Below are positions 285-46,932 of a stretch of 64,000 nt of DNA, piece after piece. Every line of letters starts with the position of its first letter. Position 1 is the first letter of the stretch. The stretch lies in NCBI GenBank assembly GCA_037447605.1, contig CM074804.1, forward strand, positions 1,488,001 to 1,552,000. Reading direction: 5' to 3'. Origin of the DNA: Zygnema circumcarinatum SAG 698-1b. Taxonomy: Eukaryota > Plantae > Zygnematophyceae. The notes beneath the pieces were generated by a model. It searched no databases. It saw nothing but the letters and a program-made list of their open reading frames with translations, and was not told where the DNA came from. The position numbers and the translations under genes were made by a program.

Positions 285-4029
<3,745 letters not shown>

Positions 4030-5102: not shown

Positions 5103-6351
5103 TCAACTCTGCTTAGGAAAGTATCTCTGGGCGAGATGGTAGACAAATTCTTTATCGTCTTGTATGGGAGCCTTCTTAAACTTCTTCTTTCCTGTGGTTG
5201 AAGGAGGGGAAGATGCCTTTGTCTCTATTTCAGGGACTTCTTTTTTGTTGCATGAGGTGTTGATGTGATTCTTCTGCTTGAGCCATCTCAGAGTCATCTT
5301 CATTTGGGTCTTGCTCTTCATACCGGCGGCCTGCACTTTTCCCGGGGGAGTTATTAGAAAAGCGAAGTTTGTAGGGGGTACAGTAAAGGGTCTTTCGGGA
5401 TCGCAAAGAAAGATTACTGCAATAGGGCTTCAGGAGGGTTCAGGAGCTTCAAGCACGTAGGGAGAGGAGGCTTGAGAGCTACGAATCCTCTCATACTAAA
5501 AAGAGAACCAGAAGGAGACCTGAAAATACGGAGGCGGTTAAGGGAGACCGGGAGAGAAGGCGACTTTGATAGAATACACAATAAGGCACATAGAAGCAGT
5601 TCAATGTTAATGTCATGTTAGGATAGTTATCTGAGGGCGAAATTTTGCATTTCAGGCGAAGATTCGAGGACTTCAGGGACACTCTTTTTCACTGAGCCAA
5701 AGTCAGATGCATAAAAAAGCGGAATCTTTGCCCAATTCTGCTTCATGCCGCTATCTCCTCTCTTCCACTTTCCTCTGCTCACCCTAGCCCCCTTCTTCTA
5801 CCCCCCCCTCTCCCCCTCACTCCGGTTCTTCCTCTCTTCTCCTTGACTCTTACATCCCTTCCTCTCACCTCCCTTCCCTCTCTCTCTCCCCATCCACTCC
5901 TTCCATTTCCGACTCTGCATCTTCCAGCTCTTTCCCTATCCCCCTTCCAATTCCCCTCTATCCCTCACTGACTCTTCCTCCCTCCCTCTCATTTCCTTCC
6001 CCCCCACTCTCTCCTCCTCCCCTCTCTCATCCTCACTCTGACTGCCTCTCCCTCCCTGACCTCCTTTCCCCTCCCTCGTCCCTCTCTCTCACTCCCTTCC
6101 CTTCCCCTCCCTCTGCCCTCCCTCTCACTCCCTCCCATCCCGCCCCGGCCCTCCTATGAACTCTCCCTGTCTCTCTCCCACCCCACCCCGCCCCTCTCCC
6201 TCTCTCTCACCTCCGCATGCTGCCATATGTCATGCTTGTTCAGCGTGCCGTGCTGCTTCAGAATCTTCACAATCACCGCCGCCGGTCCAATCTCCGCCGC
6301 CTCTCCGGTGTGCGCTTCGCGCACTGCGAGCCGCACCAAGGACCGAAACAT
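5103..6351 (-). CDS. Small basic protein (about 122 aa, 2 exons 6351-6211 and 5330-5103), possibly mitochondrial; resembles a plant family of small organellar ribosome-associated proteins
   Basis: MFRSLVRLAVREAH...IVKILKQHGTLNKHDIWQHAE|AAGMKSKTQMKMTLRWLKQKNHINTSCN...KEFVY. Phase-0 GT-AG intron and a presequence-like N-terminus. The family resemblance (I/VKEHGPL..TW..GL.SKRHMKIVLRWM..ICN..KQFLY) is from memory only. Confidence 0.7.
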
Positions 6352-7429
6352 AGCGCCCCTGTCGACGATTTTAGGGTTCAGGGACAACGCTCAGGGATGC
6401 TGCAAAACCCTAAGAGCCCTGCACACTCTAAACATGCGAAAATTCCAGCCCAAGTCCAAGCGAATGGAGGAGCTGAAAGTCATAGAGGGGTGCGAATTGA
6501 CGATTCTTTTTCTAAGGCGGAGAGGGAAAGGCTCTCATAGGCGTTTTGCAGAAGCGGCCATGGCGAATAAGAGAGGGAGAGATAGGAACGGTGGTGTGAG
6601 AGAGAGGGGGAGGGAGCGGGAGAGTTCTGGAGCAACGCAAACCCTAATCGGCGGCGACGAATGCGGCCGCGGAGGCGTTTTCGGTTTCTAGTTTTCGGTT
6701 TTTTGCCGTCGCCGCCGTACGGTAAACCGAGAATTAGGGGGAGTCAGACTTAGACCAGCGCCAAATCAATTCAGAAAGCCCCCGACCCTAATTCCGCGTT
6801 GTACGGCAGCCCAATTCCGCGAAAAGTGGACGTTCGACAGGCTCGGGCGTCACGAATTCCAGAGAGCAATTATTTTGCCTCCGTATCTCCGGGCCAAGTC
6901 TGACTCCCCCCTTTTCGCCCCCCCGCGCTCCCTCCGCCGCCTGCCGCCCGCCGCCCTCCGTTTTGTCGCTACGCGCGTCACCACCGCGCGAGCGGCGTCC
7001 CGCCGCGGCGCCTCGCGCCCGCCGCCTGCCCGCCTGCTCGCTCGCTGCGAGCTCATATCAGCTCGGGTTTAGGGTTTAGGGCTCCTCCCTCGCCATGGCC
7101 GAGCTATCCTTGCAGCGGAACGAGCAGAGCGTCCTCTCGCCTCACCCCAGTGAACGGTGAGCGGTGTGCCGTCGACCACGGCAAGAGCGCGATCGGTTTA
7201 TGGGGACGACGGCGGACTTGAGCAGCGGTGAGTCCTTGCCCTTGCCCCTGCCTCCCTTACCCTTGCCCCTGCCTCCCGTGCCCTTGCACCTGCCTCCCTT
7301 GCCCTTGCCTCTGCACCTGCCTTCCCTGCCCTTCCCCCTGCCTCCCTTTCCCTTGCCCCTGCCTCCTGTGCTCTTGCACCTGCCCCTGCCTCCCTCGCCT
7401 TTGCTCATGCATCCTTTGTCTCCCTTGGT

Positions 7430-8400
7430 GCTCTTTTTGCTACTGCTGCTGTTGCTGCTTTTTATGCTGCTGTTGTTGATGTTGCTCCTGCTTCTTATGC
7501 TGTTGCTTTTTTTGCTCTTGGTTTTTTTGCTGCTGCTGCTGCCTCTTCTTCTTCATCTGCTGTTTCTGCTGTTGTTGTTGTGCTGCTGCCGCTGCTACTG
7601 CTGTTGATACTGTTTCTGCTGCTACATCTCCTGCTGCTGCAGTTGATGTTGCTGTTGCTTTTTTTGCTCTTGGTTTTTTTGCTGCTGCTGCTGCCTCTTC
7701 TTCTTCATCTGCTGTTTTTGCTGTTGTTGTTGTGCTGCTGCCGCTGCTACTGCTGTTGCTGCTGTTTCTGCTGCTACTGCTGCAGCTCTAGTCGCTTCTT
7801 ATCCTGCTGCTACTGCTACAGCTCCTGCTGCTACTGTTGCTACTGTTGCTGCTGTTGTTGCTATTGCTGCTGTTACTGCTGTTGTTGTGTTGCTGCTGCT
7901 GTTGCTGCTGTTTCTGCTGCTGCTGCTGCTGTTGCTGCTGTTGCTGCTGTTGTTGCTTTTTTTGCTCTTGGTTTTTTTGCTGCTGCTGCTGCCTCTTCTT
8001 CTTCATCTGCTGTTTTTGGTGTTGTTGTTGTGCTGCTGCCGCTGCTACTGCTGTTGCTGCTGTTTCTGCTGCTGCTGCTGCAACTCTAGTCGCTTCTTAT
8101 CCTGCTGCTACTGCTACAGCTCCTGCTGCTACTGTTGCTACTGTTGCTGCTGTTGTTGCTATTGGTGTTGTTACTGCTGTTGTTGCTATTGTTGTTCCCG
8201 TTGCTGCTGCTGGTGTTGCTGTTGTTGCTACTGTTGTTCCCGTTGCTGCTCCTGTTGCTGCTTCTTTTTCTGTTGCTATTGCTATTTGTTGTTACTCTTG
8301 CTGCTGCTGTTTATGCTGCTGCTATTGTTGATGCTGCTGCTGCTTCTTTTTGTGGTGTTGCTTTTTCTGCTTTCGCTTTTATGTTGTTACTGCTGCAGCA
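7430..8400 (+). repeat. Degenerate (CTG/TTG)n low-complexity array with about 170-bp internal triplication (left arm)
   Basis: A block containing CTTCTTCTTCATCTGCTG...TGCTGCCGCTGCTACTGCTG recurs at about 7545, 7700 and 8000. Confidence 0.9.
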
Positions 8401-8635
8401 AAATTTTATTATTTTTTGGATGCTGCATTTGGTATTCTGCATTCTGCATTCCTCATTTCGCATTCCTTATTCCGCATTTTGCCTCCCTTGCCCATGCCCT
8501 AGCCTCCTTTGCCTTTGCCCCTTGCTGTGTTGCCCTTGCCTCTGTCTTCCCTTCCTTTTGCTTGTGCCTCCCGTTCCTTCGCTTATGCCATTGCTACGTA
8601 TATGAGTGTGTGCTATTCCTCCCCTTCCCCATTAA

Positions 8636-8706
8636 GTCAAAGTGGCGGATTGGTTACGCAACTGTTGCAAAACAGTCATAAAGGGGTTCAAATCCCCTCT
8701 TTGACT
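8636..8706 (+). pseudogene. tRNA-Cys(GCA)-like unit 1 with a 6-nt anticodon loop
   Basis: GTCAAAG/CTTTGAC acceptor stem, GCG/CGC D-stem with GGTTA loop, ACTGT-TGCAAA-ACAGT, AGGGG-TTCAAAT-CCCCT, discriminator T. Confidence 0.8.
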
Positions 8707-9038
8707 TGTAGTGTTTATTCATTCTTCTATTTTTATTTATTTAAAGTTTTTGTCTATTTGCTTCATATACCAAACATATGTTGTTATTTTTTCTAGTTGT
8801 TTTTATTCTATCTATCCATTCATTATTCTATATATTATTCTATCTGCTTCTGCTGCTGCTATTGCTGTCGCAGCATGCTTTTTTTTTGCTGTTACATTCT
8901 GCATTCCGCATTCCCTATTTGGCATTCCGCATTCCGCATTCTGCATTCTGCCTCCCTCGCCTCAGTCTACCGCCTCCAGTTCCTTTGCCTATGGTTGTGT
9001 TGTGTATGAGTGTATGTTATTCCTCCCCTTCCAATTAA

Positions 9039-9109
9039 GTCGAAGTGGTGGATTGGTTACACAACTATTGCAAAACAGTAATAAAAGGGTTCAAATTCCC
9101 TCTTCGACT
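9039..9109 (+). pseudogene. tRNA-Cys-like unit 2
   Basis: GTCGAAG/CTTCGAC acceptor, GTG/CAC D-stem, one mismatch in the anticodon stem and one in the T stem. Confidence 0.75.
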
Positions 9110-9942
9110 TGTAGTGTTTATTCTATTTTTATTCATTTATAGTTTTTGTGTTTTTGCTTCATATGTCAAATATTTGTTGTTATTTTTTTGTTGTCTTTTT
9201 TGCTTTTTACCTTTATTTGTTTCAATTGATGAGATTGTATAAATGGTTCTGAATCTTCCTTGTAGCATACACTACTACTCTTTCTTTGTTGTTATAAAAA
9301 CACATTAACGCAAATAATTTATGCACATATATACATACACACAAACATATATAAAAATACTTTTTGTGTACAAAATAAAAACCATGTCTCATTATAAAAA
9401 CTTGTACATTCATTCTCAATTTAGTAAGTACTGGCGTCACTATGACACCCCCCCTGGCCTCCTTCCCTCCCTCTCTTTGTGCACACACTTTTTTGAGTTC
9501 TCCTGTATTCTACTTTAAGCCATTCTAACTGCAAATAATATCATGTTTTAACATTAAAAGATTTTTTACGCTGCTCCAATAATGTGTAATCTTTGTTCTT
9601 CTTGAGAATCTTATATTTGTAATTTTTGTTCTTCTTCTTCATCTTGGATTCGCCTTGCCTCAGTAAACTCTCATTGTTGTTTCTCCCACTCCAGTCTTTG
9701 TCGTTGCATCTTCACTTGAGATTCCACACAAGCCATTACTTTGTGTTTCATTTGTACATTCATGGGAGAAGCGTATTCAATGTTCTAAATTGCGCTACAA
9801 CAACAACCCAATTCAAAGTTTTGAAGGAGATGGTAAAGAGCAATAAAAACAACTAAAAAAAATACCAACAAATGTTTGGCATATAAAGCAAAAACACAAA
9901 AACTTTAAATAAATAAAAATAGAAGAATAAAAAAACACTACA

Positions 9943-10021
9943 AGTTGAAGTGGGGATTTGAACCCCTTTATTACTGTTGCAATGTTTTGCAACGGTTGCG
10001 TAACCAATTCGCCACTTTGAC
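9943..10021 (-). pseudogene. tRNA-Cys-like unit 3 with an 8-nt insertion in the anticodon arm
   Basis: The reverse complement reads GTCAAAGTGGCGAATTGGTTACGCAACCGTTGCAAAACATTGCAACAGTAATAAAGGGGTTCAAATCCCCACTTCAACT. Confidence 0.72.
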
Positions 10022-10394
10022 TTAATGGGGAGAAGGAGGAATGACATACAATCATACACACAACAGTAGCATAAGCAAAGGAATGAGGGGCACAAGCAAA
10101 GGCAAGGAAGACAAAGGCAAGGGCAACACAACAAGGGGCAAAGGCAAAGGAGGCTGGGGCAGGTGCAAGGGAGGCAAAATGCGTATTGCAAAATGCAGCA
10201 TCAAAAACAAAAAAAAATGAATGCTGCAACAGCAGCAAGAGCAACAGCCGCAGCAGATAGGATAAAATATAGAATAAAGAATAGATAGATAGAGTAAAAA
10301 CAACTAAAAAAAAATAACAACAAATATTTGGCATATGAAGCAAAAACACAAAAAGTTTAAATAAATAAAAATAGAAAAGTGAATAAACACTACA

Positions 10395-10464
10395 AGTTGA
10401 AGAGGGGATTTGAACCCCTTATTACTGTTTTGCAACAGTTGCGTAACCAATTCGCCACTTCAAC
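10395..10464 (-). pseudogene. tRNA-Cys-like unit 4
   Basis: GTTGAAG/CTTCAAC acceptor. All four stems are perfectly paired and the anticodon loop TGCAAA is 6 nt. Confidence 0.8.
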
Positions 10465-10699
10465 TTAATAGGGAGAGGGAGGAATGACATACAATCATAC
10501 ACACAACAAAAGCATAAGCAAAGGAACGAGGGGCACAAGGCAAGGAAGACAGAGGCAAGGGCAACACAACAAGGGGCAAAGGCAAGGGAGGCTGGAGCAG
10601 GTGCAAGGGAGGCAGAATGCGGAATGCGGAATGCGGAATGCCGAATGCGGAATGGGGAATGCGGAATGCAGAATGCGAAATGCAGCAGCCAAAAAAAAA

Positions 10700-11290
10700 A
10701 TGAATGCTGCTGTGCAACAAAAAAAAATAATGAATGCTGTAGCAGCAGCAGCAAGAGCAGCAACCGCAACAGCAAGAGCAGCAACCGCAACAGCAGCAGC
10801 AGCAGCAGGAGGAGCAGGAGTAGGAGTAGGAGCAGCAGCACAGCAACAGCAGCAGCAAAAAAAGAAGCAGAAGCAATAGAAGCAGAAGCAGTAGAAAAAG
10901 CAGCAGCAAAAAAAACAGAAGCAATAAGAGCAACAGCAGAAGCAGAAGCAGCAGCAGCAGCACCAACAGCAACAACAACAGCAGTAGTAGCAGCAGCACC
11001 ACCACCAACAGCAACAACAACAGCAGTAGTAGCAGCAGCAGCAGAAAAAAAAGCAGCAGCAGTAGCAACAGCAGCAGCAGCAGTAACAACAGCAGAAGCA
11101 GAAGCAGCAGCCAGCACCAGCAGCAAGAGCAGCAGCAGCAATAGCAGCAGCAGTAGCAGCAGCAGCAGCAGGAGGAACAACAGCAGCACGAGCAACAGCA
11201 GCACAGCAATAGCAACAGCAGCAGAAAAAGAAGCAGCAAAAAAAAAACCAGCAGCAGCAGCAGCAGTAAGAGCAGCAAGGGAGACAAGGG
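10700..11290 (-). repeat. Degenerate (CAG)n array on + strand (right arm of the foldback element)
   Basis: AGC/AGC/AAC-rich run that is the reverse-complement counterpart of the 7430-8400 array. Confidence 0.9.
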
Positions 11291-12044
11291 AGGCATGGGC
11301 CAGGGCGAGGGAGGCAGGGGCAGGTGCAAGGGCAAGGACTCGCCGCTGCTCAACTCCGCCGTCGTCACTTCGCGTCCTCGCTGACCACTCTCCCGTGGTG
11401 CTTATGAGGTCCGTGAGGACGTGGTTGCCGCAAGGTGGGTGTTGTTGGTGGGAGAAAAAGAAACCCTAAATTGTGCCAGCCCTGCAACGCTGCTCTGCGC
11501 GGCGGCGGGTCGCGGCGTCCGGGCGGCGGCCGTGAGGCGCTCGCACGTGCGTGACGCGCATGGCGACAAGGCGGGGCACGATTCCTGATCGGCGGAAAGC
11601 TGGAATTTCGAAACGGGGGGCCTCTGGAGGCCCCCCGTTTCGGAGCGCGGAATTCTGAAATTTGGGGACATTTTTGTAGCCTATTCCGCCGTACGGACGT
11701 GACAGACAGGTTCGGGGGGAGCCGCGGTTTCCGATCCGAATTCGGAAATCGAAATCAATACCTTTCCGCGGTCGAAATCTTGCAATTCCGCGGGCGATGG
11801 TCAAGGTCTGACTCCCCCTATTACCATAGCACAGCATAGAAACGAAATTTAGGACATGTTTAGCTGATAGTAGAATTTCGGCATGTTTGAGGGCGACACA
11901 TTTAACTGCAAGCAGTCGTGATTGACACCAGGATGTGAATTTCGCACATAGAAAACAAAATTAGGAAACGAAATTGTGGTAGCAGGATTTGTGCTTTCAT
12001 TCGGAGAGCTTGCACTTTTGCATCCACGGAGTCGNNNNNNNNNN

Positions 12045-13322
12045 GCAGCAACCGCAACAGCAAGAGCAGCAACCGCAACAGCAGCAGCAGCAGCAGGAGG
12101 AGCAGGAGTAGGAGTAGGAGCAGCAGCACAGCAACAGCAGCAGCAAAAAAAGAAGCAGAAGCAATAGAAGCAGAAGCAGTAGAAAAAGCAGCAGCAAAAA
12201 AAACAGAAGCAATAAGAGCAACAGCAGAAGCAGAAGCAGCAGCAGCAGCACCAACAGCAACAACAACAGCAGTAGTAGCAGCAGCACCACCACCAACAGC
12301 AACAACAACAGCAGTAGTAGCAGCAGCAGCAGAAAAAAAAGCAGCAGCAGTAGCAACAGCAGCAGCAGCAGTAACAACAGCAGAAGCAGAAGCAGCAGCC
12401 AGCACCAGCAGCAAGAGCAGCAGCAGCAATAGCAGCAGCAGTAGCAGCAGCAGCAGCAGGAGGAACAACAGCAGCACGAGCAACAGCAGCACAGCAATAG
12501 CAACAGCAGCAGAAAAAGAAGCAGCAAAAAAAAAACCAGCAGCAGCAGCAGCAGTAAGAGCAGCAAGGGAGACAAGGGAGGCATGGGCCAGGGCGAGGGA
12601 GGCAGGGGCAGGTGCAAGGGCAAGGACTCGCCGCTGCTCAACTCCGCCGTCGTCACTTCGCGTCCTCGCTGACCACTCTCCCGTGGTGCTTATGAGGTCC
12701 GTGAGGACGTGGTTGCCGCAAGGTGGGTGTTGTTGGTGGGAGAAAAAGAAACCCTAAATTGTGCCAGCCCTGCAACGCTGCTCTGCGCGGCGGCGGGTCG
12801 CGGCGTCCGGGCGGCGGCCGTGAGGCGCTCGCACGTGCGTGACGCGCATGGCGACAAGGCGGGGCACGATTCCTGATCGGCGGAAAGCTGGAATTTCGAA
12901 ACGGGGGGCCTCTGGAGGCCCCCCGTTTCGGAGCGCGGAATTCTGAAATTTGGGGACATTTTTGTAGCCTATTCCGCCGTACGGACGTGACAGACAGGTT
13001 CGGGGGGAGCCGCGGTTTCCGATCCGAATTCGGAAATCGAAATCAATACCTTTCCGCGGTCGAAATCTTGCAATTCCGCGGGCGATGGTCAAGGTCTGAC
13101 TCCCCCTATTACCATAGCACAGCATAGAAACGAAATTTAGGACATGTTTAGCTGATAGTAGAATTTCGGCATGTTTGAGGGCGACACATTTAACTGCAAG
13201 CAGTCGTGATTGACACCAGGATGTGAATTTCGCACATAGAAAACAAAATTAGGAAACGAAATTGTGGTAGCAGGATTTGTGCTTTCATTCGGAGAGCTTG
13301 CACTTTTGCATCCACGGAGTCG
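12045..13322. other. Apparently exact 1278-bp copy of 10757-12034 directly after a 10-N gap; probable assembly overlap
   Basis: Constant offset of 1288 with identical ORFs in the track (11402..11671 vs 12690..12959). Copy 1 ends at the gap (12035-12044). Confidence 0.88.
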
Positions 13323-13801
13323 CAGTTCTATTTCCGTTCATTCCTTCCATTATAAAATGCGAATTGACTTGTGGAGAATTTTTCACTGCAAGCACTCCGA
13401 TGGCCTGTGAGTCTTCAACTGGAACTGTAACTGTAACCGAAATTCAAACTGCGACTGAGACTGAGACCAGGACATACTTTACGCGCTCAAAGAACTCGAG
13501 CAGACAAACTTTAACCAGAATTCCAATGCCACAGAAATAGACCATAGAGATCGAACACCACTAGTGAGCTGCCTATGTCTGCAGCCCTAGTTCCGTTCTC
13601 CCTACGAAGCAACAAACCCTGATGTTTTAAAGAATGCAGGAGCTCCAATATATGGTTCCACACAATAATTTACAAACGTGAATCCCTGCTAAACGCCGTG
13701 CTTCCTTGAAACGGAAATCCTGCAGCATGCAGGAAGGTCTAAAACCACCCAAAGAAAGCAGCGATGTGAACAAGTCCTAACATTCAGCCTAGCCTACTTT
13801 A

Positions 13802-15571
13802 CTATACAGAGACTGTCTGTCTTTCTGTGGCTAAAGACAAGCCATAGAGCTTAGAATACTTCCTGGTAATGTAGGAAATATAGCCGTCAGGGTCCAACTT
13901 TTTCCCAGTCAGTTTTTCCACAAGCTCGTCTGCAGTCGGATACAAGCATCCAACTGAATGCACATTCGTCCTTAGCCACTCCCTCAGCGGCTGAAATCTG
14001 CCCTTGCTAATATCAGAGTTAAGCCCCGGAAGCGCCTTTCCAGCAGCTTCAAAAATCTGGCAGGCATACACATTGCCGATCGTATACGTTGGAAAATACC
14101 CATACCCAATTGTCCAGTGAATGTCCTGCAGACATCCTTCGGAGGGCTTCTTAGGCACAACTCCCAAATACTCCTCCATTTTCTGGTTCCAAATGGCTGG
14201 AATCTCCTTCACAGAGAGGCTCCCCTCCATTAGGCCTCGCTCTATCTCATAGCGCAAAAGCACATGCAGAGTATAGGAAACCTCATCCGCCTCCACCCTA
14301 ATCAGGCTCGGCTTCACCTCATTCACAATACGGTGAAACTGCGAATACCCACTTTTTGGAAGCGATGAATATGAGCGAAGCATGACAGGCCAGTAGTGTT
14401 CCCAAAACGCTTCACTCATGCCAACTTGGCATTCCCACAGAAGAGATTGGCTCTCGTGAAGACCAAGACTTCGAGCTTTAGCAGCCGGTAAGCCCTGTGC
14501 CGCAAGCTCTGCATTCAAGCCTTGCTCATACAGACCATGGCCTCCCTCATGCATAACACCCAAAATTCCAGAAACGACATCAGTTTCCGAGAAGCGATCG
14601 GTGAGGCGCACATCATAAGGGCTCGCGATTCCTGAAGTAAAAGGGTGAGTTGATTCATCCAATCTTCCGCTCTCATAACAGAAGCCTATCTCTTCCGAGA
14701 ATCGCCTCGCCAGCCGTTTTTGCGTTTCTAAGGAGAAATGTCCGCTAAAAAGATCCATAGACTTCAGAAATTCACGATCTATTTCAGAAGATGAAGCCAC
14801 AATGCTGCGCAGAAGCTCCGTTAATGGTCCCTTGAGTTTTCCGAAAAGCAAATCAAGCTGAGACGATTTCATGCCTGGCTCATATATGTCAAGGCAGTAA
14901 TCATAGGGAGAGAGATGAGGCTCCACTACAGCAGCAAGCTTTTGTTGGATATCAACCCATTCCTGCAAAGCAGGTGCAAAAATGTCAAAATTTTCTGCAT
15001 TTCTGGCTTCCTCCCATAGAGCAGTCGAGCGGCTGGTCAATGAAGCTGACTGTGCTTCCAGCTCTAATGGTGTCCTCAATGCGCGCTGAAAATTTCGCAT
15101 AGCTTCACGAACAGAAGCAGTCTCCATGTCCGAAAATCCGGATTCCTGCAAGGGTTGATGAGCTAGACAGAGCTCATCAAGGAGATTTCCGAGAGAAGAC
15201 TCAGTTTTTTTTATATGGAGAGCTTTTGAAACTGCTTCAACCTGCCGCGCCCGAGCAGGAGCTCCCTTGGGAGGCATCATGACCTGCTGGTCCCAAAAAA
15301 GGAGATTTCTGACAGACTCAAGCGCTTCAATCTCAGTAAGCTTCTCCTTTAGCATATCAAATGGAACTCTCAGATCCTTCTTAGAAACGCCCTTGCTGCT
15401 GCTTCCTTCTTCAGACGTGCTTGCAGACGCCGAAATCCTGCATGAAAGACGGCTTTTCAAAGGGATCGGGGAAGCTCTAAGGCTTGGCAGGAATCCTGCA
15501 CAGCCTCCGGTCCACGCTGACGCCATCTGCAGAGAGAGGACGGCGGAGGCGGTCCTCGCGGCGGCAGCCAT
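13802..15571 (-). CDS. Intronless M32 family metallocarboxypeptidase (carboxypeptidase Taq-like) with a predicted plastid transit peptide
   Basis: HEGGH zinc motif, HESQS, IRVEADEVSY, GCLQDIHW and GYFPTY. The N-terminal 50 aa are Ala/Ser/Arg-rich (MAAAARTASAVLSLQ...RISASAS). Confidence 0.93.
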   Translation of the reverse strand: MAAAARTASAVLSLQMASAWTGGCAGFLPSLRASPIPLKSRLSCRISASASTSEEGSSSKGVSKKDLRVPFDMLKEKLTEIEALESVRNLLFWDQQVMMPPKGAPARARQVEAVSKALHIKKTESSLGNLLDELCLAHQPLQESGFSDMETASVREAMRNFQRALRTPLELEAQSASLTSRSTALWEEARNAENFDIFAPALQEWVDIQQKLAAVVEPHLSPYDYCLDIYEPGMKSSQLDLLFGKLKGPLTELLRSIVASSSEIDREFLKSMDLFSGHFSLETQKRLARRFSEEIGFCYESGRLDESTHPFTSGIASPYDVRLTDRFSETDVVSGILGVMHEGGHGLYEQGLNAELAAQGLPAAKARSLGLHESQSLLWECQVGMSEAFWEHYWPVMLRSYSSLPKSGYSQFHRIVNEVKPSLIRVEADEVSYTLHVLLRYEIERGLMEGSLSVKEIPAIWNQKMEEYLGVVPKKPSEGCLQDIHWTIGYGYFPTYTIGNVYACQIFEAAGKALPGLNSDISKGRFQPLREWLRTNVHSVGCLYPTADELVEKLTGKKLDPDGYISYITRKYSKLYGLSLATERQTVSV

Positions 15572-31229: not shown

Positions 31230-34200
31230 TTAGGCAGTAGCGCCGCTGCGGAGACGAGCCTGAGACTTCTTTGACCGCCGGGGCCCGCTGTCCTCATCCA
31301 CCTGCAGAAAGCAGCAGGGGCAGACATGTAACGAGAGTCAAAACCTTAAACGAAAATCACCTCAAACACAATATGCATTTCCCATACACTGTATGAAACT
31401 GAACAAGTCAAAAGTGACTTACTGCTAACTGTTCTTGGAAAGACAGTCGACTGAAACAGGACTAAATGAGCATAAATATATTCCCTAATAAGAACGACCT
31501 ATACGAGCAGTGATTTCAGATCTCCAAAACTTTTCTTAAGTTACTTTGTCAAATTCCTCAATTCGTTGAAAAAGTGAGTCAAGGAAATGAATCATGTGAG
31601 AAGTCTGTCACTCTCGCTCTCCTTCCCGCCCTCTTGTGTGTGTGTGGCTCTGTCTCTCCCTCTCAATAACCCACTTATGGGAACTTCAATTCCCTAACTT
31701 GACGAAATGGACTTCTTGACACTGCCAAAGCACATGGCATTCCCCATTTCCAAATACTGAGAGGTGACTCACCTCCTTCTTCACGGGAGCTTCCTTCTCT
31801 GCCAACGTCAGCTCAATGTGGCATGGGGCCGACATGTAGGCTGCCATGCGCCACATCACAACATATCACATCACAACCGTGACGAGCATCTGACATCACA
31901 TACCTGACATCACTTCTCTCATCTCACATCACACCCACATGCAATGGCACAACAGCTTGAAGTAACTTAAGCCCCTAAAACTGCCTCTGCAAAGATGTAC
32001 AAGAAGAAGAAGCCTTCTGCCAAAAGAACACGAAATAGTCTCCTGATACTTATAATACTACCAAAAAATGAGCTTTGAACATTCTCTCCTTCTCGTCATT
32101 CGGTTTAAGTGATAGGAAGCTCACGATTGATGCGACCGTGAGCGCGGTAAGTCCTGCGGCGCTGCTTCTGCGCTTGGTTCACCTGAATGTGCTCCACATA
32201 CAAAGTCTCGACATCCAATCCCTTCACCTGGACTCCCCAAAACCAGCATGGCAATATGTGAGAGCGGAACGAAGAAAGAGAGGAGAGGAGCAGGAGGTAA
32301 GACCTACAAGCGTGCGCGACGCCCCCCTCCTCTCTCTCTCTCTCCCCCTCTACCCCCACCCTTCCCTTTCTCCCCCTCCCAAAAGCTGCGTCTCTCCTTT
32401 CTCCACGCTCTATCTCCACTTGCGCTCTCTCATCCCATTCCTCTCTCTCCTCTCCATATCTCTTCCCCCCTCATCTCTGTTCCCCCCCCCCCACCCTTCC
32501 CTTCGCCTCCCTTCCACAGCCCCATCTCTCGCACGTCTCCTTTTCTCTCATACCGGCTTGCTCTCCCCCATCCCTCTTCCTCTCTCTGCTCTCCACCTCT
32601 CTTTTCCTCCTCACCCCTTTCCTCCCCTCCATCCACTCTCTCTCTCTTTTTAAGCTTTGACGACAAGCCTGCACAAAACTTACGAGGTATGACAACAGAG
32701 CCAAACTACACCAGTCCACCATAGCCGACAAAAGCACAGACGCAGATTTGCCCAACTTACCTCAATTCTACTGACAACAAAAGCATATCCCTTTTAAAAG
32801 CACCCAAGTACTCACCTCTGCGTTGCTCTCTGCATTCTTGAGCAGCCCCAGAAGGAATTGTGCGGACTTCACGGGCCAGCGACCCTGCCCATTGGAGTGC
32901 CGGTTCTTTGCTTGCGCAGTTCTACCGACTCCTCCACAGAACCGGCGAAACGGAATGGCCTGCTTATGAACCATCACATCCTCCAAATAGCGCTTGGCCT
33001 TGCTGAGTTCCATGCGCTTGATCGCCATGGCTGTTTCTCGGGTATTCTGCACGGAAAGAAACGGAACAGTTAGCACGGAAATTTGGGTGCTTAGTGTGTG
33101 ACCTGGGGAACTGGAATAGAATGGAACGGGAAAGACCCAAGGAGAGGATGCATGGAAATAGATCAGAGACATAATACAGGGAGCATTCTAAAGTGAAAGC
33201 TGCGCATAGTCCTCCATGCAGAGTCAGAGTTGCAAGATGCATCCTAAGGCTACGCAACTTCCCTGCTGACCCTATATTCCGAAACCGTACAAATAATGAA
33301 TTATATTGGAGCCAATAGTGTACGAGAACAAGGGGCATGAAAACCCTTAACCCTAAATCTCTAACTCGTCACCCTAACTTCTTGAACTGCTTGTCTCAAG
33401 AATAAGAGAAGTATAAATTGCGGTGTACCTTGAAGTGGACCCGCAAGTCGGAGCCCCTCGCTTTGCAAGCTGTCATAAGAAATAAAAAGAAGAAAAACAC
33501 ACAATTCAATATTTGCTCGAACTAGCGACCGATAGACGCGAACTGTAGTCAAGCATCCTCCAATGGCGAAACGTACACAATTTGTACAAGTGCCAGTCAC
33601 CATTGGAAGATGTTCGAATATTGTTCTCAATGGAGAAAGGGCCTAAGGGATTGACAGATATTGAAAGCACAATTCTCTACTTCTGCATCACTATCAATGC
33701 CTCTCCCCCTCTCCCCTTCGGATCTCTTCTCACTCTCCCATTCCCGTCCCCCCTCCCCCTCTCTCCTCAGTCTTCACCTCTCTCACTCTTCCCACACCTC
33801 CTGCCTCATCCCCACCCCCCCCCCCCTTCTCCCACTTCCCCTTCACTCCACCACCACCTCTACCACCTCTGCTCCCACTCGCATCACCGTTTTTTCCCCT
33901 CCGCCATTTCTCCTTCCCCTAACCCCTTCCACCACCTCTCTCCTCTGCAGTTTCTCGCTCTCCCTTATCACTCAATCTGTTCTCTCTCTATCCGCCCTCC
34001 TCTCTCTCCCCCCCACCCCTCTCCCGCTCGCTCCCAGCCCCTCTCTCTCCTCCCTCGCTTTCTCTACCCCCACACTCTCACTTCCGCCTTCTCTCTCTCG
34101 CCCACCCCTCCCTCCTCCCCATTACTGCCAGGGACATCAGCCGATGGGTGGTGATATATAGAGTAGTCGTCAAGGCTTGTTGGTAACCGCCATTACGACG

Positions 34201-35175
34201 AACGAGACCTTTCAAGAGTTCATCATCGTCCCTGACTTTTCCTCTCCGTCCTTCTCTCTCCTTCTCTCTCCGTCCATTCCCATATTATGTCAACCGAGAC
34301 ACCCTGAACCCTCCTGCCTCTCCCTCTCTTCCCACACCCACTCCGCTCGATGGCGCCTCCGCCATTCTCTCCACAGAGGCACCTCAACGACGCCCGCCTC
34401 TCTCTCATCCAGGCCGGTCCCTCTCCCTCTCCACTCCCTCTCACTCCTCCATCCCCTCCCACTCCCTTCCCCCCTCTCCTACCTCCTCCCTCCTCCCTTC
34501 ATTCCCCTCCTCCCCCTCTCTCTCCCTCTCCTGCTCCCACTCGCACTCCTACCTCCCAATTCCCTCCTCTCTCTCTCAATCATTCCCACCATCTCATTCA
34601 TCTTGCGCATGCTCCCTAACGGACCTCCACTCAAACTGTGAGCACAGAAACGGCGCCTGACGCATGAATGCAATATCTCCCCCGCCTTTTCATCTTACTT
34701 ATCCCCCCCTCAAATATGTATAAAGCTTCAGTAAACAGATTTTTCTACATGGAAACCCTAGCTGCCTGGAACTCACATTTGGTGGCATTCTCCGGCTCCC
34801 GCGCGTACTTCACCTGCACGTCAGCAAGGCCCGCATAAAACATTAAGAAAATAAACCAAAAAAGGGCCGTTTGATGTAATAAATAGCATGCTCTAAAACC
34901 CTAATCTCCACCTTGCACTCACACACTCCAATCCCTCAACCCTTGATACCATCACACCTTCAAATCTCAAACCCTAATCAGACCTCAGCCTCCTCCAAAC
35001 CCTAATTTCAAGGAACCACCCAAAGCTGCCCCTGAGCCCCAACCTATGCAACCCTAAACCTAGCCCTTAAGCCCTAGCCCCTCCCCCTCAGCCCTGAACC
35101 CTGAACTGCCGCCGAGTACCCAAAGCCCTGAGCCCTAAACCCTAAACCCTGGGTAGGCGCGGGGGCGCGCACCAT
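31230..35175 (-). CDS. RPL17: 60S ribosomal protein L17 (uL22), 7 exons
   Basis: M|[12 protein letters not shown]|[14 protein letters not shown]|[10 protein letters not shown]...AESNAE|[34 protein letters not shown]|[23 protein letters not shown]|[23 protein letters not shown]. Confidence 0.97.
34130..34233 (-). ncRNA. Intronic box C/D snoRNA with two guides, both apparently against 18S rRNA
   Basis: Terminal stem AGGGAC/GTCCCT, C box ATGATGA, C' TGACGA and D box CTGA. Guide AGGTCTCGTTCGT is complementary to conserved 18S ACGAACGAGACCT. Guide TCACCACCCAT is complementary to 18S ATGGGTGGTGG. Confidence 0.88.
34950..35150. promoter_or_regulatory. Telo-box (AAACCCTAA) cluster in RPL17 intron 1
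   Basis: Several AAACCCTAA/AACCCT motifs. Telo-boxes are typical of plant ribosomal protein genes, but they are also abundant elsewhere in this window. Confidence 0.45.
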
Positions 35176-35933: not shown

Positions 35934-37241
35934 TCAGAACCACTTCCCTCCCTGCAGGTACTCGGCCTCCTCCGGGGTGCTTTCCCGCCCGAGCGCGCCG
36001 TTCCGGTGCGGGAAGCGTCCAAAGCGCCGTACGACCACGCGGTGCCGCTCCGCGAACTCGAGCATCGCCTTTGTCGCCTTCTGCACCGCGTCCGGCGAGG
36101 AGGAGGAGGAGGCGGCGGCCGCGGCTTGCGCAAACAATTTGACGGAGCGGTCCTGGTCGGCCAAATCTGCGAATGCAAATACTTCGGCTTGGACTTCAGG
36201 ACAAGAGAAATGATGATAGCGTTGGGGGCGTAGGGGGGAGGGTGGAGGAGGAGGGAGGGGGGAGGAGGGAGGAGGGAGGAGGAGGGAGAAGGAGGAGGGA
36301 GGGGAGAGGAAGAGGGAGGTGGGAGGAGGAGGGAGGGGGAGGAGGGAGGGGGAGGAGGGAGGGGGAGGAGGGAGGGAGGGGGAGGAGGGAGGAGGGAGGG
36401 AGGAGGGAGAAGGAGGAGGGAGGGGAGAGGAAGAGGGAGGTGGGAGGAGGAGGGAGGGGGGAGGAGGGAGGGGGGAGGAGGGAGGGGGAGGAGGAGGGAG
36501 GGGGGAGGAGGGAGGAGGGCGGAGGAGGGAGAAGGAGGAGGGGGAGGGGAGAGGAGAGGGAGGTGGGAGGAGGGAGGGGGGGGAGGAGGGAGGAGGGAGG
36601 GGGAGGAGGAGGGAGGGGGAGGAGGGAGGAGGGAGGAGGAGGGAGAAGGAGGAGGGAGGGGAGAGGAAGAGGGAGGTGGGAGGAGGAGGGAGGGGGAGGA
36701 GGGAGGAGGAGGGAGGGGAGGAGGGAGGGAGGGGGAGGAGGGAGGGGGAGGAGGGAGGGGGAGGAGGGAGGGGAGGAGAGGAGGGAGGTGGGAGGAGAAG
36801 GGAGGGTGGAGGAAGAGGGAGGGGAGAGGAGGAGGGAGGTGGGAGGAGGGAGGGTGGAGGAGAAGGGAGGGGAGAGGAGGAGGGAGGGGCGAGGAGGAGG
36901 GAGGGACGAGGAGGAGGGAGGTGGGAGGAAGAGGGAGGAGGGAGGGAGGAGGAGGAGGAGGAGGGAGAGGGAGGAGGGAGGAAGGAGGAGGAGGAGGGAG
37001 GGACGAGGAGGGAGGGAAAAGAAGGGAGGTGGGAGGAGGGAGGGAGGAGAAGGAAGGGGGGAAGAGGAGGGAGGGGGGGAGGAGGGACGGGGAAGGGAGT
37101 AGGAGTGGGAGGGTGGGGGAGTCCGCGAGGAAATGGGGGTGAGAGTAGGAGAGGGATGGGCGGGAGTAGGAGAGGGAAAGGGGGCGAGAAGAAAAAGAGT
37201 TTTGGTTGGAGAGGGAAAGTGCATTGGGGAGGAAGAGAGGA

Positions 37242-37298
<57 letters not shown>

Positions 37299-39284
37299 GG
37301 AGGGCGGAACAAGAGTGGTCCCACCTTCACTGTGCTCGAACGGAAAGTAGAAAAAAAGACGCATGGGAATTGGAAGCTGCTCATCGAAGCCTCGCTCGAG
37401 GGCTCTGCGCATCACAAATGACAGAAATAAAGATGGGAGAGAGAGAGAGGAGGAGTGAGGGTGGAGAGGACAGGAGAAGCAGGGAGAGACAAAGGAGCGA
37501 TGGGAGAGGGAGGAAAAGAGGAATGAAGAGATTGAGGGCGGAGGGGAATGGGGAAAGGAAAAGGAGGACGAAGAAAGATTGGGAAGACGGAAGTAAGATT
37601 GGAAAGATTGAGAGTAGAGGGGAGTGAGAGAGAGAGTCAGGAATAAAGGGGAGAAAGAGGGAGGGGAGAGTGGGTGGAGCTGGGTAGAGGAACAGGGAAG
37701 ACAAGGAGGATGAGAGAAGAGGGAAAAGTAGGAGAGGGGGGGAGGAACGGAGAAGGAACCGATAACAGTAGAAGGAAGGAGGAAAAAATAGAAGTGAAAA
37801 ATGGAGAAAGGGAGCAAGATATAGGGCAGACAAGAGAGACACAGGGGGAAAGGGACATAGGGGAACAGTGAGAGAGAAGGGGCGAGAGAGAGAGGGAGTG
37901 AGAGAGAGAGAGGCGCTATACCTCCTTGCGATATCTCTCGCCACGTGATCCTGCTCAACAAAACGATCCCTTTAACATATTTCTAAAAAAAAAGACAATC
38001 TTTTCCACATCCAAGTTTTTTTTAAGGATGCTTACAACAAAAAAACTTCAAATTTTAAGAAAGAGGCGAAGAGAAGAAATGAAAAAAGCTTTTTTTCAGA
38101 AGACAATGTAACCCAATATCCAATAGAAGACAAAATCTAATTAAAGGAAAAACATATAACGAAAAATAGAAAATAAGTCGACTTTCCATAAATAAAAAAG
38201 AATTGGGGCAGAAAATAGCGACAGAAAAACCCACCCTAGAAAAAGCCTCCCCGGAATCCCGGAAGCTGTTCCGTGTGAACTGGTCGAGCAGGACGACCAA
38301 TGAGAGCGCGCCACGTGGCGTCTCCTCCCAGGCCGCCAGCTCACCCCGTCCGGCCTTCAAAATTAGGTCTAAAAATTTCGCCCTTATAATGTTGTCAATT
38401 TCGGGCCCTCCGGAAAACCAAGTTTGCTGTTTGCTTAGCTGCTGCTCCGGCGAGGCGGCTCCCTGAATTTTTCTTTTCACAACATGAAAAAAAAAAAATG
38501 AATTGAAATTCAATTAGAATTAAGAAGGTATAACACATATATGTGAGGGTGTATTTTAAAAGAGAATTTACTTAATAAAAAATGAAAATTTCGATGAAGA
38601 AAGTGATTTTCTCTCTAAAGACGTCAAATTTCCTGACATGTCTAAGTGGCTTGAATCCTAAAACCCTAAAATCTCTCAAAGTTCGAAAACCATCCAACCC
38701 CAAAAACCACTACATCCCTGAACCCCGTAAAACTCTAACACCATAAAATATTAAAAGACTAAAGCCCTAAAACCCCAAATCCTTAAATTTTTAAATCCTA
38801 AAAGATAAGGGCGGGGGGGGGGGGGTTAAACAGGATATTTAAAAAAAATAGGGTTTCAAGGGTTTCTAGAGTTTTAGGGTTATTGAGGTTTCTAGATTGT
38901 TTGGAGTCTTTGGGGTTTAGGGTTTTAGGGTTTTATCAGGTTTCTAGATATTTCTAGGGTTTAAGCTGTAAATAAAGCGTTTAGGGTTTGAGGGTTCAGG
39001 GTTGCCTTTTCCCATGCCCATCCTCATTCCGAACCTTTCCCAGACCTAATCCAAACCGGTTTTTTTTTTAAACCCCAAAACCCAAAAGTGAGAACCTGAC
39101 CCAGACTGATTCCGAAACCATTCCGGACCTGTCCCGAACCTGATCCGTCCGTCCGTACCTCGTATCCGGGCACGGCCCACGGCCCGAACCAAAAGTCAAG
39201 GACGGCCGCGATGCCGTCCGATTCGCCCACCGACATTTCGTCCTTTTCAAAAACGCCAACCTCCGCCGAACCTCCGTCCGCCAT
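35934..39284 (-). CDS. DUF924 family protein, 5 exons
   Basis: [45 protein letters not shown]|DLADQDRSV and [24 protein letters not shown]. Confidence 0.9.
36232..37135. repeat. About 900-bp almost pure G/A (GGA/GGGA) degenerate array with higher-order repeats in the last DUF924 intron
   Basis: Nearly no C and few T on the + strand. The unit GAGGAGGGAGAAGGAGGAGGGAGGGGAGAGGAAGAGGGAGGTGGGAGG recurs. Confidence 0.92.
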
Positions 39285-43200: not shown

Positions 43201-45487
43201 GTTCACCAGTGGATCGAGTTCAGCCCGGAAAGAGGGACCCCAGGTGGAGTTCTATGTGAAATTTGAAAGATTTAAATTTGAACGGATTCATGGAAACAGT
43301 TTTGTGGGGGGGGGGGGGGGGGGGGGGGGGGNNNNNNNNNNGGGGTGGGGTGTCTGCTGTTGGCGGTTCAGTTACAGTTTGACGGTGAACGGATTTTGAT
43401 GTTTCCACATGTGAAGGGAGGGAGCAGGCAGCTGGTTTGGATGAAGGCTCGGGGGAGGCTCGGGGATGGGCAGAGCTTGCACTCGTACGGACATGTCCCG
43501 CCTCTCCCTAGGATATGTGGGAGAGAGAGGGGAGGGGGAGAGAGGGAGAGGGAGAGGGAAGAAGTGAGAGTGGGGAGGGAGGGGACAGGGAGGATAGCGT
43601 CGAGGTAGAGATGGAGAGGGAGGGGAGATGGTGAGAGAGGGGAGAGGTGGTGGAGTGAGAGTGAGAAACGAGGAGGGGAGGACAGAGAGAGGAAGGAAAG
43701 GAGGAGAGAGAGAGAGGAAAAAGGTCCAATGCTGGAGAGGGAGCCCAGAGAAAGACGGGAAGAGGAAGGGATTTCAAGGGAAGAGAAAGCAGAAGAGAGA
43801 TAGAAGCAAAGCAGAGGGAGTTTGGGCGGTAGAGGTTGAGAGAGAGACAGAGAGAGAGAGCTGAGTGAGGAGCGTCAGAGGGAGAGCAACAGAGACGAGG
43901 TGGGAAAAGGGAACGGCAATTTCAAACTTCTTATAGTAAATGTACTTTCCTTATTAGTCTATCCTCTGCTTATTTTTCCACTCCCACCCCACCCCCTACC
44001 TCCCCACTTACTTTTTTTATTCGCTCTTGTCGTCCTTCTTCCCTTCCTTTTTCCTTTCTTCCTCTCCCCCTTCCCCCCCCCCCCTTTTCTCTCACTCATT
44101 TTGAAGGGAAGTGCAGCTGTGTATTGGCATATGCCTCCGACTTCACATTTTTAGAAACTGCGTTACTTCCACATGGAATCAGTTCTCCCAACCCCTCCAT
44201 GGTCATGGCGAGCCTCGATCACTGGTGGGCTCCCTCCCTCCCTCCCTCCCTCCCTCCCTCCCTCCCTCAACCATCTCGACCAATTTATAACACTTATGGT
44301 GCTTAATAGTTAACTTCATTTATTATGGCATAATAGTATGTTAATTTCGTATATGACGACTTCGAACTTTTACTGTTGATGTCCGCATTCAGTGATGAGA
44401 TGTGACGGGACGAGATGTCACGTGTGAAGAGTTTTTTGGGGGGGGGGGGGGGGTGTTCCATGTGCAGCATGTGGTTCCACCGACCGTTCCGTGCTGACGA
44501 GTGGCTGCTCTATGAGGTGCTGCCATGTGGCACCGCTGTTGGCACATAGAACAGGCCTCTAGAGATTCAAGTTTGGAACTGATGACGGAACGAGGGAGGG
44601 GGCTCAAAGTGGTGCAGAGAGGCCTTTAGAGAGTTGTGGTGAAATGAGAATCTCTCCCTCCCTCCCTCTCTCTCTGACTCTCTCACACCCTCTCTCTCCC
44701 TCCCCCACTCCCCCCTCCCCATCCTCTCCCTTCCCGTCCCCCTCACTCTCCTTCTCCCTCTCCCTCTCCCTCTCCTTCTTTCTCTCCCTCTCCCTCTCCC
44801 TCTCCCTCTCCCTCTCCCTCTCCCTCTCCCTCTCCCTCTCCCTCTCCTCTCCCTCTCCCTCTCCCTCTCCTCTCCCTCTCCTCTCCCTCTCCCTCTCTGG
44901 GTGGCAGATTGAATCTCCCCGCTCGTCCGGTTCACGGGGTTTCTGTTTTGGCCGATTTTACACGCGCAGTGGGGAGGTACGCGCGAGGACCAAACCCTAA
45001 CTCAAAAGGAACCAAGGAGAGGGAGAGGGAGAGGGAGAGAGAGGGAGGGAGTTGGGGTGGGAGGTCAGTGGGAGCTGGAGAGAGAGGACGGAAGGTGCAG
45101 GACGAGAGAAAGGTGAATGAGAGGAAAGAGGAGACAGAAAACGAGAGAGGGAGAGAAAGAGGGAGAGAGAAAATGAGGGAGGGAGAGGGAGGGGGATTTT
45201 TTTTTTTTTTAAATCAACTCGATGTCTCTCTTCCCTTCTCTTTTTCTTCACCTTTGGATGTGCAGCTCGTGGTTTCGGTAGCCCAAGAAGGTCTCATTCG
45301 AGTCTCCGGTCGGCCCAGACTCGAAACAAGTACCGCGCACGCCCCCAAGGCACCGCCACCTTCACTGCGTCCCAAGGAAACCGATACTGATTCCGATCTG
45401 AGGCAAAATCCGGCCGAAGGTCTTGTAACAAATACAACAAATGTTGAGGAGGGAGCGATGGGGGGGAGGGCAGTGGCGAAGTTATAG
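40242..45487 (+). CDS. ACH2: Peroxisomal acyl-CoA thioesterase II with an N-terminal cyclic-nucleotide-binding domain (plant ACH2/ACOT8-like), about 14 exons
   Basis: [34 protein letters not shown]|[48 protein letters not shown] and [11 protein letters not shown]-terminal PTS1 AKL*. Confidence 0.93.
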
Positions 45488-46932
45488 GGCCGAAAATATT
45501 TCGGTTTGGGACGCGGTGCAGAGGGGGAGAGGGGAGAGGGGGGAGGGGAGAGGGGAGAGGGGAGAGGAGAGGGGAGAGGGGAGAGGGGAGGGAGAGTGGG
45601 AGAAGGAAGAGGACAGAGGGGAGAGGGGAGTGGGGAGAGGAGAGACGGGAGAGGGAGAGAGAGGAGAGGGGAAAGAGGAGCGGGAGAGAGGGGAGAGGAG
45701 AGGGGAGACGGATTTCACGTGTGCGTGAGGGGGGGTTGAAAATCTGTGAGGCACTGTTCCTTTGAAGGTTGAATAGCAAAAACACACTCGACCTTCAGAG
45801 ATTTTTTTTTTAAGTCATTGGTCAGCCCCTTCTGAACTGAATTCTCGGATCACCGGCCTCCCCCGAACTAGAATCCGCGTTCCGGCCCTGCGGGAGAGGG
45901 CAGCGGGGAGAGAGGGAGTGGGAGAGAGGGGAGAGAGGGAGAGGGAGAGAGGAGAGAGGGGAGAGATGGAGAAGGGAGGGAGAGGGCAGAGAGGATGAGG
46001 GGCAGCGGGAGAGGGGGAGAGGGAGCGGAGAGAGAGGGAGAGCGATCGCTTATAGGGGAAGGAGGAGGCGCGGATGGCGAGGGTGATTCTGTAAATTGTA
46101 AAATAAAATAAAGTCTGAGTCTGAGTCTGAGTCTGAGTCCCCTTTTCCAAGTGCTTGTTCCAAGTATATGTCGCAAATTTATTAAAGTTTAAATGTTGCA
46201 TTTTTCACAAACGTTGCAACTTCAAATTTCACCGGGCCCGCGACGAATGGCAAATTTGGAGAGTTTGAATTCTGAATTTTATTTGATGTTATTCAATGTG
46301 GTGATTGATTACTAAACTTGGCCTGGTTAATGGCGGAATGGATGGCTGGCTAACACCATGACCAAGCCAATGGCTGGACGTCCAATAGTTGGCGGTCCGA
46401 TGGACTGAAGTTGTCCTCAAGACGCCTCCGTACTAGCCAAGTCAGAGAGCCGAGTCAAGTCAAAGCAAGAAGTCAAACATTGGTCAACATACACGACGGC
46501 TGCTGACTACTGGCGGCCAGATCCGTACGTATGAAACGCGTGTATAATAATAGCCCGTATAATACCACATTTTAAACTACAGTGTACTTTATATACATTT
46601 AACGTCTTTTCGTCGTTTTCTTGCTAGTCAGAGATTGATTATAAGAATTGAAGCCTCAGCCGTAAGGCAGCTCTAGAACACCTTATGCTAGTCTCAAAAT
46701 AGTCGTATTGAAAAATAGGTCTACAAAAGCAGTTTCAAGGGGGGCGGTCATGATGGGCCATGTGGTAGTGCTGCTACCTGCAGCGGTGAAGGCATCATGA
46801 GAAGGATGAGAGAAGAAGAGCAACAACAAAATGATGATGAAAACTCTTTATGCACACAACAAAAAAAGCCTCACCTTTTTTCTTCTTCTACTATTTGTAA
46901 TAATCACACCCGAAGAAGAAAAGTGAATATAA

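Follow-up and report, generated by a model that had tools for sequence, protein, structure and literature searches.

A probable non-autonomous foldback DNA transposon with tRNA-Cys-derived modules in the alga Zygnema circumcarinatum

Foldback transposons consist of flanking, tandem-repeat, inner and middle domains and usually contain no open reading frame (ORF); described examples include FB, Galileo and Tetris from Drosophila, FARE from Arabidopsis and Tnr8 from rice, and Tetris shares its termini with DAIBAM (PMC4079207). Here, we analyzed a 5,084-bp inverted-repeat element at positions 6736-11819 of a 64,000-nucleotide stretch of the Zygnema circumcarinatum SAG 698-1b genome (assembly GCA_037447605.1, contig CM074804.1, positions 1,488,001 to 1,552,000 of the forward strand). 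This whole stretch is referred to below as the window, and all positions are given in its coordinates. An initial annotation, made from the sequence without database searches, had described the locus as a foldback element that is bounded by terminal inverted repeats (TIRs) and carries tRNA cargo. Overall, our data indicated that the element is probably a class II (TIR) DNA transposon copy that is non-autonomous and has foldback architecture.

The layout of the locus follows that of the known foldback elements, in which very long arms dominate, outer, tandem-repeat and inner domains surround a short middle domain without an ORF, and arm length varies through repeat expansion (PMC4079207). The two arms, 6736-9215 (2.48 kb) and 9825-11819 (1.99 kb), account for approximately 88% of the element and face each other across a 609-bp middle domain, or spacer (9216-9824), which is unique in sequence, has a GC content of 33.5% and contains only ORFs of 88 amino acids or fewer. 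These values, together with the tandem arrays that we called in the arms with Tandem Repeats Finder (TRF), place the locus in the foldback structural class, and they bear out the two facing arms of roughly 2 kb and the AT-rich spacer of approximately 600 bp that had been proposed. From its end toward the centre, each arm runs through a TIR, a subterminal domain, a telomere-like motif, a 40-bp island, 21-mers, a triplet array, heptamers and two modules. The left and right arms are 75-89% alike (11-25% divergence, depending on the domain) and differ in length by approximately 490 bp. Their similarity ends sharply at the termini, and the 100 bp beyond either end share none. The long-armed element at 6736-11819 is a genuine structure, with all of its listed structural details present. 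Three features set it apart from the described foldback families: it lacks an 8-10-bp target-site duplication and shows only 2-3 bp, its arms repeat a microsatellite triplet, a heptamer and 21-mers, and its inner domain consists of tRNA-derived modules, which we did not find described for those families. A literature search for a tRNA-bearing foldback element in algae likewise returned nothing specific.

The argument for mobility begins at the termini. The left TIR (6736-6757, plus strand) and the right TIR (11798-11819, minus strand) are 22 bp long and agree at 20 of 22 positions; 0.00 such pairs are expected by chance, and shuffled sequences yielded nothing comparable. The perfect 13-bp core of the left TIR, GGGGGAGTCAGAC, was found at 6737-6749 (+), 6898-6910 (-), 11806-11818 (-) and 13094-13106 (-), with 0.12 occurrences expected in the window. 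The last of these matches is not biological because it lies inside an assembly duplicate, which is described below. Conservation is much higher in the terminal 22 bp than in the adjoining 310-330 bp of subterminal DNA, where the two sides show a weak but real similarity (alignment score of 30, compared with -2 and a standard deviation of 8.3 for shuffled sequences). The left subterminal domain (6758-7065, +) is GC-rich and contains the 9-mer AATTCCGCG at 6790 and 6813, as well as the inverted copy of the 13-bp terminus at 6898-6910. The right subterminal domain (11472-11797, -) contains AATTCCGCG at 11646 (-) and 11784 (+), together with a 34-bp palindrome at 11609-11642. These four sites fall within 674 bp of subterminal sequence, and the rest of the window (57.4 kb) contains no further copy. 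The 13-bp TIR, the TA on both flanks and the repeated subterminal motif reported by the initial annotation were all present, and the TIR proved longer than had been stated.

The extra inverted TIR copy, previously placed at 6896-6911, was also confirmed. It lies 148 bp inside the left terminus, has no flanking duplication and aligns opposite the diverged 34-bp palindrome of the right arm. We considered whether 6737-6910 could be a separate 174-bp miniature inverted-repeat transposable element (MITE), and rejected this candidate because no duplication flanks it and its inner end aligns with that palindrome. We interpret the inner copy as belonging to the subterminal structure of the family, where it is possibly a secondary binding site. 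Independent elements nested in each arm were ruled out as well, since inner TIRs near the spacer were not found.

The bases that flank the element can be parsed in two ways, both of which fit the single copy. Next to the terminal GGGGG/CCCCC stand an A at the left end and a T at the right end, so the perfect inverted repeat grows to 14 bp, and the candidate target-site duplication outside it is ATT (6733-6735 and 11820-11822). Alternatively, a 13-bp TIR is flanked by TA (6735-6736 and 11819-11820). ATT with an A...T terminus accounts for four flanking bases per side and TA for two. Moreover, a 3-bp duplication that starts with A and ends with T will always look TA-flanked when it stands beside an A...T terminus. 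Given TA, we estimated from base composition that the further bases required for ATT would match by chance approximately once in 40 cases. Judged from this one copy, insertion most likely duplicated a 3-bp ATT, and TA is the less likely target. The TA flanks had been taken to suggest a Tc1/mariner origin; TA does stand on both sides, but the combination of ATT and a 14-bp TIR fits better.

Comparison with known superfamilies gave partial likenesses. The PIF/Harbinger elements (Tourist, mPing) share with the favoured parse of this locus a 3-bp duplication in an AT-rich target, and the G-rich terminus containing AGTCA presumably resembles the mPing/Pong end. The canonical PIF/Harbinger duplication is TWA (TTA/TAA) and directly abuts the TIR, whereas the clean parse here is ATT with an A...T terminus: at the left end GGGGG is abutted by TTA, but the triplet at the right end is TAT, in departure from the TWA rule, and the ATT repeat lies one base farther out. 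The element is also 5.1 kb long rather than a few hundred base pairs. MITEs of the Tc1/mariner group (Stowaway and pogo-derived elements) are likewise flanked by TA on both sides and non-coding. However, the TA is equally yielded here by the ATT parse, and the element is ten times the size of a MITE and built as a foldback; we also take its terminus to be unlike the Stowaway consensus. A target-site duplication of 8-10 bp, as expected of the Mutator/Foldback type, was absent: 6727-6736 and 11819-11828 do not match, which rules out a Mutator-type affiliation. If ATT/AAT should prove to be the duplication throughout the family, these foldback elements would stand apart from the Mutator affiliation that is usual for the class.

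We favour a mobile element because the termini have outlasted their neighbourhood, the 9-mer occurs at the ends alone, the element is flanked by short direct repeats and nothing in it codes. Together with the sharp boundary, these internal features support the non-autonomous foldback DNA transposon of the initial annotation; its Tc1/mariner suggestion is not the best fit to the flanks, and its cruciform is unlikely. A putative history can be outlined as follows. A transposase acting in trans would recognize termini of 14-22 bp, with the subterminal AATTCCGCG sites as probable further contacts, and the target duplicated on insertion would most likely be the 3-bp ATT, with TA as the less likely choice. 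The arms would then drift in sequence, and their lengths would shift by slippage and unequal exchange within the arrays, a process for which the 298-bp higher-order repeat of the left arm provides direct evidence. The tRNA-like units would be inherited cargo that keeps its cloverleaf, its U73 and its RNA polymerase III (Pol III) A and B boxes. Transcription across the element would allow the arms to pair as a long imperfect hairpin, a plausible source of small interfering RNAs (siRNAs). For genome annotation, the locus offers the ends, the domains and the likely 3-bp target of a putative foldback family in an alga of the plant lineage. Such a family could be mistaken for tRNA genes, for polyglutamine- or leucine-rich genes or for palindromic mis-assemblies.

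Several observations weigh against the transposon interpretation. The window contains a single copy, the strong divergence of the subterminal domains casts doubt on recent mobility, and the inner TIR copy at 6898-6910 has neither a clean counterpart in the right arm nor a duplication of its own. A flanking repeat of 2-3 bp in one copy is weak evidence by itself. When metagenomes were scanned for the 21-bp TIR, a single match appeared, in a bacterial-like coding stretch of 41-46% GC, which we took to be a chance match. In the window, a self-BLAST of 6000-14500 against the full 64 kb returned only low-complexity matches, and TIR-pattern searches retrieved this element alone plus a chance match in an (AGTCTG)n microsatellite. 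That microsatellite, at 46113-46140, mimics the TIR core TCAGAC and so gives a false TIR match.

The same observations bear on the alternative that survives best, a static local palindrome in which a tandem locus of tRNA-like units and microsatellites underwent inverted duplication where it stood, perhaps through fold-back break repair, and was never mobile as a unit. Repair can yield palindromes of tandem repeats; moreover, only one copy is present in the window, its arms are old and unequal, and neither a transposase nor a proven target duplication was found. However, a static palindrome would not predict termini with higher conservation than the DNA beside them, a 9-mer restricted to the ends (four sites compared with none), or homology that stops exactly at an inverted 22-mer with a direct ATT/TA repeat. 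We therefore regard this alternative as unlikely.

Within the arms, repeats are found between the subterminal domains and the modules. The left arm contains a telomere-like (telo-box-like) TTTAGGG motif of 2.3 units (7066-7082, +; motif match at 7068-7081), and the right arm has its counterpart at 11464-11470 (minus-strand arm), just inside the right subterminal domain. TTTAGGG/CCCTAAA is common throughout the window, with 40 occurrences compared with 10.75 expected (approximately 4-fold) and small clusters at 38664-38986 and 35052-35146; the motifs in the arms therefore mark the genome rather than the element specifically. The window as a whole has a telo-box-rich or interstitial-telomere-like background. 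Farther inward, a 40-bp island at 7206-7245 (+) is conserved at 38 of 40 positions (95%) with 11326-11365 in the right arm, amid surroundings that are much more diverged between the arms. The telomere-like motif and shared sequence that the initial annotation had assigned to each arm were thus recovered. The left-arm island also contains a GGTGAGT donor-like site, and the islands are the start of long low-complexity ORFs in both arms.

The tandem arrays themselves differ between the arms. On the left, 21-bp repeats (7234-7395, +; 6.9 copies) precede a (TGC)n-based array (7426-8400, +; called by TRF at 7528-8344) that is organized into higher-order repeats of 152 and 298 bp, the 298-bp unit being present in 2.2 copies at 90% identity. 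On the right, 21-bp repeats in 2.3 copies and the 40-bp island occupy 11285-11365 (-), and the (AGC)n array (10741-11277, -) comprises 179 units. Toward the centre lie four modules, 370-480 bp in length, all of which combine a tRNA-like unit with a tail rich in AT. The left outer module M1 (8401-8845, +) contains heptamers, 21-bp repeats, a tRNA-Cys-like unit at 8636-8706 and a tail with T runs, and the left inner module M2 (8846-9215, +) contains 7.7 copies of CATTCCG (8895-8948) and a decayed tRNA-like unit at 9039-9109. The right inner module M3 (9825-10262, -) has a broken tRNA-like unit at 9941-10021, and the right outer module M4 (10263-10740, -) has a tRNA-Cys-like unit at 10395-10464 and 9.9 copies of GAATGCG (10615-10683). 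The trinucleotide array, heptamers and duplicated tRNA-like module of approximately 400 bp that had been proposed for each arm were all found. Module order is mirrored between the arms. The outer modules M1 and M4 form the closest pair (84.7%) and have a common junction sequence, and the inner modules M2 and M3 share an end sequence of their own. This sharing of junctions, outer with outer and inner with inner, suggests that the tandem duplication of the modules predates the inverted arrangement or was inherited with it.

The Rfam tRNA model accepted two of the units, 8636-8706 (+) at 49.6 bits and 10395-10464 (-) at 52.1 bits, and ARAGORN assigned a 4-base "anticodon" to both. The other two, 9039-9109 (+) and 9941-10021 (-), are more decayed: the former has lost its B box, and the latter is interrupted by an insertion of 8 nt and mispaired at two positions of the acceptor stem. 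Alignment of the four units revealed a GCA anticodon, a U as discriminator base (U73) and a normal T arm. A functional tRNA-Cys would combine a cloverleaf with a 7-nt anticodon loop bearing GCA, and none of the four units has such a loop; in all of them it is 6 nt long, or 8 nt with a broken closing pair. On sequence grounds, the units are tRNA-Cys-derived modules that cannot decode because of the 6-nt anticodon loop. Three units retain matches to the A and B boxes and are followed by T runs at a distance of 14-25 nt, and the tRNA-Cys-derived units may still be competent for Pol III transcription. Compensated double changes were observed at 3 of 20 stem pairs among the four copies, alongside six unpaired cells, and 24 of 500 shuffles reached this level. 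The 72-nt tRNA segment is 90% identical on average, compared with 83-85% for its flanks. These four related sequences give a weak hint of structural constraint. A metagenome scan with the tRNA-like core returned 0 matches.

Multiplied tRNA-derived Pol III modules are known from other mobile elements. The heads of short interspersed nuclear elements (SINEs), and likewise Cassandra, a terminal-repeat retrotransposon in miniature (TRIM) with 5S modules, resemble the units described here in that cloverleaf-derived A/B-box units with downstream T runs are multiplied together with a mobile carrier. In contrast to those systems, the modules of this locus stand as inward-facing pairs inside a putative cut-and-paste element, not at the 5′ end of a retroposon, and they apparently derive from a tRNA-Cys whose anticodon loop has been shortened.

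The arms also have the potential to form a long RNA structure. The inner 1.5 kb of the element (8781-10280) is predicted to fold into one long imperfect hairpin of -514 kcal/mol, and the arms share 23 perfect inverted matches of at least 18 nt, the longest of 33 nt. A read-through transcript could plausibly form a long imperfect hairpin or double-stranded RNA and serve as a source of siRNAs, and mirrored arms near a promoter would be a reasonable locus for hairpin-derived siRNAs. The initial annotation had proposed either a long hairpin RNA or a cruciform. The RNA hairpin is thermodynamically plausible, but extrusion of a DNA cruciform is, from established knowledge, unlikely because the spacer is 609 bp long and the longest perfect match between the imperfect arms is only 33 nt.

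This folding potential raises a second alternative, in which the locus is a domesticated or functional RNA locus, either a source of hairpin RNA and siRNAs or a set of selected Pol III-transcribed tRNA-like RNAs. The stability of the inner-arm hairpin, the compensated stem pairs, the higher identity of the tRNA segment and the three units with A and B boxes and T runs all count in favour of this alternative. Nevertheless, the non-decoding 6-nt anticodon loop occurs in 4 of 4 units and 2 of 4 are visibly decaying (6 unpaired cells, the 8-nt insertion and the lost B box), and the excess of conservation is small and was measured on four related copies. We consider a domesticated locus quite unlikely. 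We would also give only a slim chance to the narrower idea that the tRNA-Cys-like units are Pol III-transcribed, structure-selected RNAs or processing signals that are needed by the foldback family or used by the host. Under that idea, small RNAs could be freed from the arms by RNase P/Z cleavage at the units, or the units could be boundary elements; the compensated stem changes, the intact A and B boxes and the slightly raised conservation of the units would be compatible with it. If true, the family would be a cut-and-paste counterpart of the tRNA-headed retroposons.

The right end of the element coincides with an assembly error that the initial annotation had not noticed. The 1,278 bp at 10757-12034 are printed a second time, with 100% identity, at 12045-13322, across a 10-N gap at 12035-12044. 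The window contains six such 10-N gaps, and an overlap of this kind was found at one of the six. The sequence at 12045-13322 represents overlapping contigs that were joined by Ns and left unmerged, and the stretch 12035-13322, comprising the gap and the artefactual second print, is not biology. Consequently, the fourth TIR match is an artefact, as is the repeated AGC array. Trouble for the assembler at this very end could suggest that the inverted arms were themselves produced by a mis-join or a chimeric read. However, such an event would give near-identical arms, and the foldback is not an assembly artefact, since its arms differ in sequence, in length and in array structure. In addition, the gap lies 216 bp beyond the right TIR, outside the palindrome, and the overlap is a direct rather than an inverted repeat. 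We therefore consider an artefactual origin of the arms highly improbable. The duplicated 1,278 bp can be flagged as a concrete error of the assembly.

The element shows no coding capacity. Its ORFs are of low complexity only and gave no Pfam match and no homologues, and no transposase gene of its own was found among them in either search. For the ORFs at 11469-11837 (-) and 9816-10349 (-), a protein homologue search returned nothing at E<=1e-3. The arms contain long ORFs because the triplet arrays are stop-free. It is barely conceivable that these ORFs, which begin in the 40-bp island of each arm with M(G)TTA(D/E)LSSGESLPL at approximately 7199 (+) and 11368 (-), are two convergent low-complexity protein genes, as several frames are open merely through the triplet arrays, an ATG is missing from the right-arm ORF, the array lengths differ two-fold and neither Pfam nor homologues support them.

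The probable transposon occupies an intergenic space of approximately 1.1 kb. To its left, at a distance of 385 bp, lies the ATG (6351) of an ORF on the minus strand, with a GT approximately 150 bp downstream; the candidate first exon, 6157-6351 (-), encodes MFRSLVRLAV... and is followed by GT. A Pfam search of the candidate left-hand host-gene exons gave nothing significant. The host-gene start that had been placed approximately 400 bp from the element thus has a candidate ATG at a suitable distance and is plausible but unproven. A telo-box, AAACCCTAA, lies at 6639-6649, approximately 290 bp upstream of this candidate exon. The right-hand neighbour is an intronless gene for an M32 carboxypeptidase (13805-15571, -; Pfam E-value of 5e-157), and once the duplicate is removed, the right end of the element lies approximately 0.7 kb beyond its stop codon.

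Elsewhere in the window, a plant C/D small nucleolar RNA, snoZ43, was matched over its full length at 34132-34231 (-) with 62.4 bits (gathering score of 43); like the TTTAGGG enrichment, this match is in keeping with a genome of the plant lineage. A (GA)n/(CT)n dinucleotide array of approximately 600 bp at 3032-3690 yields poly-RE and poly-LS ORFs in all frames. Finally, approximately 450 bp at 5760-6215 are CT-rich (CCCTCT-like) and of low complexity, and the blocks at 36230-37010 and 44650-44900 resemble them.

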